From assembly GCA_965240325.2 (NCBI GenBank), contig OZ251223.1, forward strand, positions 2,542,001 through 2,606,000: a DNA stretch of 64,000 nt, in the 5' to 3' direction. Shown here piece by piece: positions 33,684-38,633 of this stretch (position 1 is the first letter of the stretch; each line of letters opens with the position of its first letter). The DNA comes from Rebecca billardiae RCC1528 (Eukaryota > Protista > Haptophyta). The position numbers and the translations under genes are program-made. Under the pieces are notes generated by a model. The model searched no databases, had not been told where the DNA came from, and worked only from the letters and a program-made list of their open reading frames with translations.

Positions 33684-33815
33684 ATATATATATATATATA
33701 TATATATATATATATATATATATATATATATATATATATATATATATATATATATATATATATATATATATATATATATATATATATATATATATATATA
33801 TATATATATATATAT
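33684..33815. repeat. (TA)n microsatellite
   Basis: Seen directly. Confidence 0.97.
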
Positions 33816-33817
33816 TA

Positions 33818-35669
33818 CAGTGGGCTGGTCCCACTGGCGGAGCAGAAATTCAAAACTATCTGACGATCGGCGCGGTCTCAGCGACTCGGAACAAACGGGG
33901 TGCGACAGACTAGCGCCGGCGGGGTATGCGCCGGCGTCTGAGCTCACCAGCGCGACTTCAGCAAAGCGCGCGGACGAAAATCAGCTCTCCGGGAGGGCCC
34001 CTGGCCTGCGCGGGGTCGCGGTCGCGGCGCCGGGCGCGGGGATGCTGTCAGCTTCCGAGCCCGTACAGCTCGTCGCGCGCGCTCGGGGTGCGCGAGGCGA
34101 CGCGGTACGACGGTGGCGTGGACCACCACCTCACGCCTCGCTGCGTCGTCAGCGTGTACAGCCCACCGCTGCCACTAGCGCCAATGTGAATGGCACTGCT
34201 CGGAACACAGCTCGATGCGTCGCGCGTTGTCGTTTGCGTCGACTCGTCGCTCGGCCGGAGGTGCAGCTGACGCGCTTGCCGAAGCAGCACCGCAGACCCC
34301 GCTCGATGGTGTGCGCGGCGTGAAGTTCGCACCGAACGTCTTCTTGTGGCGAGATGCGCACCGCCCGCCGCAGCGCCCGCCGCTGCCGAGCCGGCCGCCG
34401 CTGCGGCCGCCGCGCCGGCTGCCGCCGCCGCGACCGCCGTCGCTGCGCCATCAGCCGGCCCGGTGCTGCCGCACTCGCCGGGCGACCCCTCGAAGATGCG
34501 CGCAGCGTGACGTGCACGGCGAGTAACTCCTCGTCGCGAGATGCGCTCCACCCGCCGTCGCGCCGGCCGCCGCGGCGTCCGCCGCCGCGGCGTCTGCCAC
34601 CGCGCCGCCCCGGCTACAGTGCCGCGCCAGCGCGGCAGGCGCAGCGCCCGACCGCTGCGGCGCCCGCCCGGCTGTCACGCCCGCATTCAGCAGGCCCGGT
34701 GCTGCCGCGCTCGCCGGGCGACGAATCGATATCGCGCGCGGCGTGACGTGCGCGCCGAGTGACTCCTCGTCGCGAGATGCGCTCTGCCAGCAGCCGCGCC
34801 CGCCACCGCTGCTGCACTCGCCCCCGCGCCCCGGGATGCCACCGCGCCCGCGCCCGACCGTCACGCCCGCCGTCAGCAGGCCCGATGCTGCCACGCTGGC
34901 CGGGCGCCGCGGTGGTCGCGGCGTTTGATGCCGTCGCAGACGGCGTGCGAAGCGCGGCGTCGGTACCCGCCCACCCTGCACGATGTTGCCGCGCTGCAAC
35001 CTCAGCTTGATCGCTGACTCCACGCTGAGAGCTCGCGAAGAGACAGCCCACCCGCACAGTGGCAGTCTTCGCCCAGGAGCGCCGTATGCGTAGCGGTGGG
35101 TGCGGAACGTGGCGCTCGACTTCTCCTCGGCGTCCGAGTCCTGCATCTGCTCCTGCACCAGCCCCTCCCATTCTGCGCGCGGGCGCGGAGTCGGTGGCCG
35201 CGCCGCACGATGTCGACGCGAGGGGCGCCGCAGCAGATGTCAGGTATGGTGACCGCGCTTCCGGCGGGCGTTTTCAAGCGGAACTTCTGGAACGCGTTGC
35301 TCATTGAAACTCGTGCGGAACCACCGTGCCCGATTTTGCACCCCGCGGACGCACGGTCGGCGCGCCGCGCGAGCGCGCACCAGCGCGGGCACCCGGCTTG
35401 TGCCTCTGGTCGTGGAGCCAGTCGCCACGATTCGGCGGCGCCTTGAGCTTGCGCGCGTCCGCAATCGCCCAGGTTCGCCTCACAACTCGTGGTGCTCACT
35501 TCCCCGCCGGCTCACGCGGCGGACTTGCATTCGCCTCGCGCCACAGCGCCCGCGCCTCCTCGTGGGGGCGGCTTCGAAGCCGCCGCCGCCGTCCGCCGCG
35601 CAACCGCCGAAGCTTCGCCAAAACTCCGGTCCGTTGTTTTGCAGGTCCCCCAGTGAGACCCACCCACTG
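33818..35669. mobile_element. Non-autonomous Tc1/mariner(pogo)-like TIR element inserted in (TA)n
   Basis: TA|CAGTGGGCTGGTCCCACTGGCGGA ... TCCCCCAGTGAGACCCACCCACTG|TA: imperfect TIR of about 25-30 bp with TA flanks. No transposase recognised. Confidence 0.72.
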
Positions 35670-35786
35670 TAATATATATATACATACATACATATATATA
35701 TATATATATATATATATATATATATATATATATATATATATATATATATATATATATGTGTGTGTGTGTGTGTGTGTGTGTGTGTG
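35670..35786. repeat. Compound (TA)n(TG)n microsatellite
   Basis: Seen directly. Confidence 0.95.
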
Positions 35787-36371
35787 GCGTTATAACGGAG
35801 TTATAACCGAGTGTGTCGGGAGGCTGGAAAGGCGACGCGCAGCTGGTGGACAAGGGCCGCCATCGTCTTCTAGGTCCTGCAGGTAGTTGTAGCCGATTTC
35901 CGGAGCTCATCGGCCACGGAGCTATCCTTTATCATCATCATGGCGGCCGCTGGTCCTTTCATATCGGCCAACCACACTGGCTCCTCTATAAGTACCCGCT
36001 CCGCTCCACTATCCGGCGCTCGAGATCATATCCAAGATCATCTTAAGTCGGCATGGCAACGTATTACCAAAGTTCATCAAGCAGCCCACCTATCAGAGCT
36101 CGCTCGATCATCGGTTACACGACCTTTCCGCTTTCGGGCCAAGCTGCTCATCTCTAGGCCACCCCTGCTTGCCTGCGCATCGCCATCAGCAAAGCCCGAG
36201 GTCTCATCTCCTCTGCGTTCCTTGCTTGTGCTCGTTGCATGGCGTGTATCATCGGCATTTGCTGCATGCTCACACATGTGCTGCAATACCTGCCCTCGCA
36301 TGCACATCACGCAGATTGTGGGTGATGTTCGTCCATACTCAATGGCGTCGCGTCGCTTTCTATGCAGGAGG

Positions 36372-36507
36372 ACACACACACACACACACACATATATATA
36401 TATATATATATATATATATATATATATATATATATATATATATATATATATATATATATATATATATATATATATATATATATATATATATATATATATA
36501 TATATAT
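36372..36507. repeat. Compound (CA)n(TA)n microsatellite
   Basis: Seen directly. Confidence 0.95.
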
Positions 36508-36510
36508 GAT

Positions 36511-38471
36511 TAAACTTTTCTGAGGATAGCGCACCAGCAATTTCCCTTGACCGCCATCCGGGCCGAAGTGGCGCAAAATGGCGGTTGCCCCGTTTGGGCG
36601 CCCTTCCGCGCCTTCGAGCGGCTCGTGCGCGTCGGGAAGTGCGCCGAAGCGTATCCGGAGCATGCTCCATCGACGCGTCGCACTGCCGGGCCCTCGCATG
36701 CGAGCCCATGCCGACGTCTGAGTGCGCCTCGCTGCGCACGGTACAGCTTGACGGTACACGGCACGATTCGGCCGCGAGCAGCCTCGTGCGCGCGACCGAG
36801 CCAGAGGTGGTCGTCGAGAGTAGCACGAGCGGCGGCACACAAGCGGGCCTGGTCGTTGCCGAATATCTGACGCACCAATCGACCTCGCCCAGCGCCATCT
36901 GCTCGTTTGCGCACGTGTCGGAAAGAATGCGCAGCTGCCTGCAAACGCCGAGCGCGCAGATGAGGCGTGGGCGAGCGAAGGGGCGGCGAGGGCCGGCGCG
37001 TGCGCGCGCGTAAATTCGAGCCTCCCCATACGCATCGAAACACACCGCGCTCGCTCGTCGAGCTGCGCACGGGTATCGGTGCGCGCGCGCCAACGCGGCG
37101 CGCCGTGAACGCGCCCGGCGAATGCACACCTGCTCGCGCGCGCACGCGCACGTGATGGACCGAGGAGGCCGCGCGAGCATGCGCGATGTGTCTGGATGGA
37201 GCGTGTAGGAGGTGTAGGCTGCGCTCCGCACGCGCTCCGCCACCGTGCACCGCGCTGCCCCTCGTCCACGCGATCGCCGCCGAGCCCAGATTCAAACGCG
37301 CGCGAGCGCTCGAGCGCACCTCCGGGCAGCAGTCGCAGCTATCGTGACGAAGGCGTGGCGAGAGGCAGATGTGCATGGCAAGTATCGTCATGGTGGTGCC
37401 CATCACGCGCACACTCTCGCGCATGCTCGCTGCACCACCTCGTCGCGCCCACGTGCAGCGCGCGGGGCGCGCTTCGTGCCCGGAGCAGCTGCGGAGCGGC
37501 TGCCGCGCGCAGTGCGCGCGGCGAGTAGGGCTCAGCCAATGGTCCGAGGGCGAGCCGGCCGAGCGTCGTGCGTGACGCACACGGACCTGGTGCAACGCCG
37601 CGTACCACTCGCAGCCACCATCGCGCCCGTACCAGCGAGCTGTGGCCGCCGCCGACACCCCAAAGCAGCCCAGCCGTCAGCGCGCGACAGCCGACGAGCG
37701 CGTGACGCGCGCGTGCACCACCGTGATGAGCACGGATGAGCGCGCGCGCCCGTGTCGTAGCTCAGGTGGGGTCCCCCGATCGCACGCACCACCGCGCTGC
37801 CACGCCTTCGACCATCTTGTGTCACCACGCGGGCACACGCCGGGCAGGCGGCGGGGCAGCCCGCTCGGCAAACGGTCAGCGCGCAGCGAGGATGGAGTCC
37901 GGCGAGGGGCGACCGGAGTGTCCGGCGCGACGGAGGTGGTCCACGCCGTGGTCGCCGACGCGTTCCTCACCACCTCCGAGGCCGTGGTGGCCGCCCGGGA
38001 GAAGGAATGCTCCCAGTCGCACCCTTTGCAGTGCTCCTTTGCGCGTGCACGCAACGGCGAGGAGCGGAAGCGTTAGAGGGCACTTTTTGTGCAGTTCAGG
38101 CGTTCTTTCCCCAAAATGTAGAATGCGCGGAGAAGTGCCCTCTAACGATTTTCGTGTGCAGCCGTGCCGCGCGCGCGAGGAAGGCCACATGCGGCTCCTT
38201 GCACATCTGCTGCAGATCGGCTCGTGCTCGGCGAGCGCGGCGAGGAGGAAGGTGCGCGCTCGCGAGCTGGCGCACCTGGGAGTCCTCGCGGCCTCCGAGC
38301 AGAAAGAGCGCGTCGAGCGCAACGCCGCAGGTCGCACGGTCGCGATCTCGCGAGAGCGGTGGTGCGAGGGCGGGCCTCGCCATCGCGCGTTTCTGCGTCC
38401 AAACGCGGCCTCCGTAAAATCCGGATGGCGGTCAAGGGATTTTGCTGGTGCGCTATCCTCAGAAAAGTTTA
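36511..38471. mobile_element. Non-autonomous TIR element with 51-bp TIRs embedded in microsatellite
   Basis: TAAACTTTTCTGAGGATAGCGCACCAGCAAtttCCCTTGACCGCCATCCGG (36511-36561) is the reverse complement of 38421-38471 with 2 mismatches. The terminal TA may be the TSD. Confidence 0.85.
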
Positions 38472-38633
38472 CACACACACACACACACATATATATATAT
38501 ATATATATATATATATATATATATATATATATATATATATATATATATATATATATATATATATATATATATATATATATATATATATATATATATATAT
38601 ATATATATATATATATATATATATATATATATA
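38471..38633. repeat. Compound (CA)n(TA)n microsatellite
   Basis: Seen directly. Confidence 0.95.

Follow-up and report, generated by a model that had tools for sequence, protein, structure and literature searches.

Targeting of TA microsatellites has been published for MuTAnT (Mutator-like, Medicago), Micron (rice) and TAFT (maize) (PMC4486113). MuTAnT has GGGG tips, a 9-bp target site duplication (TSD) and a mudrA partner, and flanks of this type show a variable number of TA repeats, a repetitive setting in which the TSD is hard to read (PMC4486113). Here we describe a 64,000-nt window of the haptophyte Rebecca billardiae RCC1528 (C3:2542001-2606000 of a eukaryotic assembly of 72 Mb in 41 contigs; C numbers denote contigs, and L numbers, such as L052, label genomic loci holding other copies), in which a (TA)n tract at positions 33684-38633 is divided by three inserts, termed El1, El2 and El3. 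The earlier note on this DNA had ranked the tract as its best candidate for an undescribed system, a description that is overstated in view of the published TA-targeting families.

We consider it probable that the (TA)n tract took three recent independent insertions from three mechanistically unrelated families, each with a preference for TA. By Tandem Repeats Finder (TRF) and direct reading, four pure TA arrays of 132, 86, 116 and 145 nt were found to separate the three inserts, with the following layout (TIR, terminal inverted repeat).

33684-33815: (AT)66 array (TRF, 100% matches); its final AT (33814-33815) serves as the left-hand El1 TSD copy.
33816-35671, + strand: El1, a non-autonomous DNA transposon of 1,856 bp that is non-coding; its ends are TACAGTGGGCTGGTCCCACTGG...CCAGTGAGACCCACCCACTGTA and its flanks AT/AT.
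35672-35757: (TA)n array, (AT)43, with a TACATACATACA interruption; its opening AT (35672-35673) serves as the right-hand El1 TSD copy.
35758-35785: (TG)n run, (TG)15 to 35786 by TRF; expanded left tip GT of El2.
35784-36375, + strand: El2, a probable solo A-B unit of a split-direct-repeat family, GT GGCGTTATAACGG...GCAGGAGGAC AC.
36372-36391: (CA)10 run; expanded right tip AC of El2.
36392-36507: (AT)58 array between El2 and El3 (TRF).
36508-38474, + strand: El3, a 1,967-bp non-coding element with 51-bp TIRs and tips GATTAAAC...GTTTACAC.
38471-38488: (AC)9 / (CA)9 run; expanded ACAC tip of El3.
38489-38633: (AT)72.5 array, the right end of the tract (TRF).

El1, El2 and El3 were found to be mutually unrelated, and each is a multi-copy family with 99-100% identity to copies on other contigs. 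Thus, the four (TA)n arrays and three unrelated inserts of the earlier note are borne out by TRF, by reading and by the separate families, and its statement that the TIRs start within a few bases of the repeat edges holds as well, the gap between element start and TA run being 0-2 nt. Coding periodicity was absent from all three inserts, though genes of this genome have a GC content at third codon positions (GC3) of ~0.95, and Pfam, Rfam and tRNA scans of the inserts gave no match (sub-threshold Rfam/tRNA hits fell on the TA arrays only). GC content across the window ranges from 60 to 87%, and the tract appears to lie between genes, in an island that is richer in AT than the very GC-rich genome as a whole. 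What was read directly, namely family membership, end structures, the TSD of El1 and the TA runs beside other copies, is presented below.

Arrays of (TA)n with n of at least 12 make up only ~0.2-0.3% of the genome, with ~2,600 G/C-bounded array ends and a typical length of 50-170 bp; thus, the association of the elements with TA runs is far above chance. When the flanks of other copies were tabulated, TA- or CATA-type runs were found at 10 of 19 El1 copies, and TA runs at all El2 ends examined and at 21 of 21 El3 copies. Since each family displays its own preference for TA runs, the locus is read as the outcome of repeated independent hits, in agreement with the earlier suggestion that (TA)n is struck repeatedly by several families. 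Selection alone, with insertion at random and survival only in harmless TA tracts, would offer another account of such flanks, and the genome is compact and GC-rich with its TA arrays in AT-richer intergenic islands. This account is very unlikely, however, as copies of 100% identity, and hence very young, are already 100% TA-associated with a constant T^A phase, nine El1 copies stand at non-repeat sites, and other TIR elements of the genome have non-TA duplications.

El1 is represented by at least 18 full-length copies of 94-100% identity. Its ends, TACAGTGGG...CCCACTGTA, are inverted and carry an invariant TA (TA-CAGTGGG...CCCACTG-TA) that belongs to the element; the CAGTGGG TIRs noted earlier for a 1.85-kb element are therefore real as inverted ends but also include this TA. 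Outside the invariant TA lies a variable 2-bp TSD, which was detected by script as a direct repeat in 15 of 17 copies and which also fits L009 and L014 when these are read by eye. The duplicated pairs include AT, TA, AC, CA, AA, CG and GC, of which AC, CA and AA are non-palindromic. Ten of the 19 copies reside in TA- or CATA-type microsatellites, and those at unique sites have no TA run. Thus, the TA association of El1 reflects its target and not its cargo, and El1 does not seed TA repeats. El1 would be a cut-and-paste DNA transposon that prefers AT/TA dinucleotides and lands in a microsatellite about half of the time.

The ends TA-CAGTG...CACTG-TA resemble those of a Tc1 element with its TA duplication, and a link to TA-specific Tc1/mariner elements had been raised for the locus. 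By contrast to Tc1/mariner, the TA of El1 lies inside the element, the duplicated target is a variable 2 bp, and the open reading frames (ORFs) of a longer El1 form (below) match no Pfam family and so hold no Tc1/mariner/pogo transposase domain. The Tc1/mariner assignment was rejected on these grounds. The only DDE_3 match of the genome (L066, C31:420119-420556) is an intact 473-aa frame at another locus and is unrelated to El1. Neither ends like those of El1 nor clear TIRs accompany this Tc1-type gene, which may have been domesticated or may be a lone relic.

A search for autonomous partners, as proposed in the earlier note, was productive for El1: a 4.56-kb form with the same ends and 2-bp TSDs was found in two copies, on C16 (L065) and C17 (L064), that are 99.85% identical to each other. 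Compared to El1, this long form is 93% identical over the first 287 bp and 83% identical over the last 700 bp. It has an uninterrupted frame of ~1,320 aa, with GC3 of 0.94-0.97 at codons 300-1000 and 1100-1200, and its main ORF includes a long G/R/A-rich low-complexity linker. In L064:500-5100 (C17:6300-10900) and in L065, ~0.9 kb upstream of the main ORF is periodic in a different frame, with GC of ~0.9 at position 1 of the long frame, which suggests a second gene.

The protein encoded by the long form gave no Pfam match, no relative by word search and no PDB match by sequence or profile. Only seven relatives were detected among 1.84 billion representatives, none with a Pfam domain. A six-sequence alignment retains GDL··LRM·LG, C·C, Y·W··C··C, D·(L/M)HA··LNL·K···EW and (G/A)NE··G··LG; in the same alignment C(2)C, D(2)H and the C-terminal GNE are conserved, and H(3-4)H is not clearly so. 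In a language-model comparison, both the protein and an independent relative had RAG1, Transposase_21 and DUF1280 clusters as neighbours (0.84-0.94), which serve as leads only, and the AlphaFold2 model had a predicted local distance difference test score (pLDDT) of 43 and was unusable.

Motifs of C(2)C and H(3-4)H type are common to the CACTA, Mirage, Chapaev, Transib/RAG1, Plavaka and ESTA elements, whose termini are mostly 5'-CA...TG-3' and whose TSDs measure 2-5 bp (PMC12730594). El1 is similar to this CMCT clade in its 2-bp TSD, which is within the 2-5 bp range, in its CAG...CTG core termini and in the C(2)C of the long-form protein. It differs in the invariant TA outside CAGTG on each side, in its lack of a clear H(3-4)H and in the missing Pfam/PDB match. 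Based on these sequence features, El1 is tentatively placed in the CACTA/Mirage/Chapaev/Transib (RAG1-like) neighbourhood, and it may be mobilised in trans by the 4.56-kb partner through a ~900-aa orphan DDE-like protein.

El2 was detected in at least 45 copies, with left ends that all read (AT)n-GT-GGCGTTATAAC and right ends that all read ...GCAGGAGGAC-AC-(AT)n. Every El2 end examined has either an AT run of at least 4-6 nt, also at otherwise unique sites, or an AC|GT joint; head-to-tail units are connected by an exact AC|GT joint with no TA between them. Over more than 2.3 kb, three loci on different contigs (L045, L049 and L051) are 99.3-99.5% identical, and their order is body, a 264-bp X, A, u, a second X of 264 bp and then a TA run. 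We read this layout as the B1-A2-B2 end of a split-direct-repeat element, of which the 0.6-0.8-kb units would be solo A-B units. The copy in the tract is without ~208 bp that most young copies have.

The ~0.59-kb segment had been described as capped by (TG)n/(CA)n. The runs are present, and the caps, (TG)15 and (CA)10, are the canonical GT and AC tips of El2 in expanded form. Most other copies begin (AT)n-GT-GGCG with a single GT, L052 being another with an expanded run, and at the right end (AC)k varies from k = 1 to ~47 among copies. After insertion, the GT/AC tips beside (AT)n probably slipped into (TG)n/(CA)n.

In its body-B1-A2-B2 order, 264-bp repeats, precise head-to-tail joints and lack of a TSD, the El2 family resembles Ngaro/PAT elements (A1-body-B1-A2-B2). 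It differs from them in that the loci read hold no reverse transcriptase or recombinase gene and end before A1. El2 would be a solo unit of the tyrosine-recombinase retroelement type that joins between the T and the A of an (AT)n run; in the literature searched, no report was found of strict (TA)n targeting by Ngaro/PAT-type elements. An El2-like family with left end GTGGCGTTATTGGCACAATAAC was observed at L040:3587-3620, where it starts 6 nt after the 3' end of F7, a retroelement family described below; it is an additional family with a GTGGCG tip and a habit of residing in TA runs. At L043:1440-1480 and L049:2425-2470, a near-palindromic repeat end (...GACCGCGGAACGCGGTC...) adjoins TA runs, in both orientations, beside El2.

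El3 has ~65 copies, as estimated from 130 TIR matches (compared to 0 in the reversed control), and the copy in the tract is 100% identical to four others. Its 51-bp TIRs, which had been reported for a 1.96-kb element, were confirmed at 96% complementarity. An older copy (L062) has the symmetric tip GTTTAATC, and ACAC is thus a derived variant that later slips into (AC)j, where j is 2 in most copies and ranges from 0 to 13. The left flank is an AT run of 3-116 nt in 21 of 21 copies, the right flank is an AT run of at least 6 nt in 17 of 21 (L024 and L062 were read individually), and the junction phase is T^A in all copies. The four exceptions (L021, L027, L028 and L040) directly adjoin 5'-truncated F7 copies and are element-to-element junctions within TA tracts; in at least 10 of the 21 copies an F7 fragment lies in the adjoining run. 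The shortest TA runs flanking El3 cluster at 6-9 nt per side. By our analysis these short runs are compatible with an ~8-bp all-TA duplication blurred by slippage, of the kind reported for MuTAnT (PMC4486113), and equally compatible with a TA crossover core or homology-driven entry.

A sister family, El3b, has ~21 copies that retain the tip GATTAAACTTT and the GCGCACCAG motif and that carry the same variant TIR on both arms. The co-varying arms and conserved tip of El3 and El3b look like those typical of protein-recognised transposon ends. Similar to MuTAnT, Micron and TAFT, El3 and El3b are TIR elements of non-autonomous appearance with variable TA repeats at nearly every copy. By contrast to MuTAnT, the tips of El3 read GATTAAAC, a fixed TSD could not be demonstrated, and no mudrA-type partner was found, the only MULE-domain hits of the genome lying elsewhere. 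Most likely, El3 belongs among non-autonomous DNA transposons like MuTAnT and Micron, and its duplication would be hidden in the repeat.

Assignment of El3 to DIRS was rejected, since no internal region complementary to the joined ends was found beyond chance 7-10-mers. Three long El3 TIR pairs were likewise rejected as autonomous forms, as they hold unrelated nested TIR elements with non-TA duplications. Four long El3b intervals are present, at C34:33907-39374, C7:1306924-1311324, C29:925198-929004 and C19:1434163-1437853. None of the MULE, hAT and PIF domain hits of the genome falls inside long El3b intervals, and the MULE hits (C23 and C10) are not bounded by El3/El3b TIR positions. Unrelated 2.2-3.0-kb TIR elements are nested in or beside the right TIR of El3 (element position ~1925-1933) at L061, L062 and L063; one has hAT-like TAGGGGGTCC...GGACCCCCTA ends and a 7-bp CAAGGGA duplication, another has an 8-bp ATTTCCCT duplication, and one shows a 3-bp overlap. 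With their 3-bp or 7-8-bp non-TA TSDs, these nested elements reveal that TA association is not universal among the transposons of this genome. At L026, an isolated copy of the first 8 nt of El3 (GATTAAAC) is located 8 nt upstream of a (TA)18 run, with a complete El3 on the other side of that run; this copy may be a footprint or may stem from some aberrant event.

F7 is absent from 33684-38633 itself. Its 28 anchored fragments range in size from 37 to more than 900 nt, and each terminates in ...CCACGTCGTTA with an A/T run and (AT)n behind it; such a shared 3' end, with 5' truncation at variable points, is characteristic of a target-primed retroelement that lacks long terminal repeats (non-LTR). 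Genome-wide ~739 such 3' ends were detected, compared to 0 in the control. The 3' ORF has a PD-(D/E)xK-like motif, and the protein is not recognised by Pfam. Microsatellite-specific non-LTR retrotransposons with a restriction-like endonuclease have been reported (PMC4640811); F7 resembles them in its common 3' end, variable 5' truncation, PD-(D/E)xK-like motif and microsatellite target. Stubs of 11-37 nt of the F7 3' end (ACGCCTGCCCGTTGCATACCACGTCGTTA), truncated at the 5' side, were observed at L029 (reverse complement, ~3470-3560), L030, L033, L036 and L040, each in its own (AT)4 and some in tandem, forming mini-repeats inside TA tracts. At the right tip of El3, eight copies have a 5'-truncated F7 at 0-16 nt in the same orientation. 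Retro-mobilisation of El3 through template switching from F7 is a minor possibility, given that such adjacency is expected with ~739 F7 ends in TA runs and that one case is at the left tip of El3.

Several observations weigh against three independent insertions into one pre-existing tract. No empty site was recovered that would directly show a TA run before insertion of El2 and El3. All four arrays are as long as a typical whole array, such that splitting of one ordinary array is insufficient; either the arrays regrew after splitting or TA was gained at insertion. No fixed-length TSD fits all El3 copies (the short-run copies L029, L063 and L023 being the cases in point), and the long TIR pairs and domain hits examined yielded neither an autonomous partner nor an enzyme for El3. 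The class of the El1 protein is indicated by weak leads only (no Pfam/PDB sequence match, pLDDT 43). The junctions of El1, El2 and El3 were read from the assembly. The enzymes, the insertion order and the regrowth of split arrays are what we infer from the structures described above.

The full length of the four arrays would be accounted for if the elements carry or create TA runs, such that the arrays are largely element products grown by slippage. El2 and El3 would bring (AT)3-4 per end, either as part of the element or as an ~8-bp TA-only duplication, and F7 would add its (AT)n tail. Consistent with this, the shortest runs beside El2 and El3 cluster at 5-9 nt per side, tandem 37-nt F7 stubs each have their own (AT)4, and GT/AC tips demonstrably give rise to (TG)n/(CA)n. 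However, El1 occurs at unique sites with no TA run, and unoccupied arrays exist, including a (TA)33 at 44550-44615, 6 kb away, that has no adjoining element end. El3 copies of 100% identity with runs of 3-145 nt would require implausibly fast growth, and no increase in run length with copy age was detected between the 97% and 100% identity groups. This origin of the arrays is thus unlikely. The earlier idea that the elements seed TA repeats at their ends stands only for the (TG)n/(CA)n caps and fails for El1.

Entry by homology would account for the lack of a fixed TSD. El3, and possibly El2, would then be enzyme-less, the segment between TA arrays moving as a circle or cDNA and re-entering any other TA array by recombination, or by microhomology repair where the cruciform-prone repeat is broken. 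El3 has no coding capacity and no autonomous partner was found for it, run lengths vary on both sides with no fixed-length TSD seen, and the elements end exactly where non-TA sequence stops. In human cells, repair of TA-repeat breaks by microhomology-mediated end joining has been documented (PMC13645644). These points are countered by the 51-bp TIR, by the tip and GCGCACCAG motif common to El3 and El3b with arms that co-vary, resembling protein-binding ends, by El2 head-to-tail joints with no intervening TA, and by the replicative step that ~65 near-identical copies demand. We regard movement of this type as distinctly improbable.

Long TA runs are prone to form cruciforms and break often. In a related and broader proposal, which we hold to be doubtful, (TA)n would be a general integration substrate for unrelated classes of elements, with El2- or El3-type elements entering by recombination or repair on a short TA core in place of a conventional staggered cut. 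If true, this would explain why no fixed TSD is seen, why an enzyme is missing for El3 and how arrays regrow after being split, and it would describe a self-reinforcing system in which each insertion generates two new arrays that regrow and draw in more elements.

The junctions could also be assembly joins at collapsed TA repeats, as TA arrays and 100%-identical 2-kb repeats are difficult to assemble. We find this extremely improbable. The AT/AT duplication of El1 is intact at the locus, the same types of junction are found at dozens of independent loci, the order of El2, array and El3b was found again on another contig, and an assembly of 72 Mb in 41 contigs implies long reads.

Independent insertion by TA-preferring families, which we favor, also agrees with the abundance of such trains. 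On C17 the architecture is repeated as unique DNA, (TA)n, El2, (AC)47(AT)53 and El3b. Long TA arrays number ~1,300-2,000 genome-wide, and TA-resident copies are well above 900 (~739 F7, 65 El3, 21 El3b and at least 45 El2), which by a rough Poisson estimate predicts tens of arrays with at least three elements. Among the loci examined multi-element arrays were common, and at least five families share the TA target genome-wide. Thus, the locus, which the earlier note had suggested to be a safe-harbour hotspot, is a clear example and not an exceptional hotspot. The train would be a by-product of many families using one scarce target.

Elsewhere in the window, positions 43880-44615 form a microsatellite island, with ~270 bp of (GA)n and ~190 bp of (TATCAA)n running directly into the unoccupied (TA)33. 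Blocks of 82-87% GC are present at 13000-18000 and 49000-53000, and positions 57000-64000 are 82-84% GC with a sustained GC skew of ~-0.46.

Prior reports of TA-microsatellite targeting deal with one family at a time, mainly plant DNA transposons. Here, at least five families with different transposition chemistries use the same dinucleotide repeat in a genome that is otherwise 70-85% GC: a DDE-like transposon with a 2-bp TSD, a probable split-repeat retroelement, a strict TIR element with its sister family and a putatively nuclease-bearing non-LTR element. Convergence of several mechanistically unrelated families on (TA)n in one GC-rich genome is unusual. It provides a natural system in which target choice encoded by the element can be set against target choice imposed by the structure or fragility of the TA repeat. 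The birth of microsatellites is visible in the same loci, as (CA)n/(TG)n growing out of element tips. For annotation and assembly, each TA array of this genome should be handled as a nest of mobile elements.

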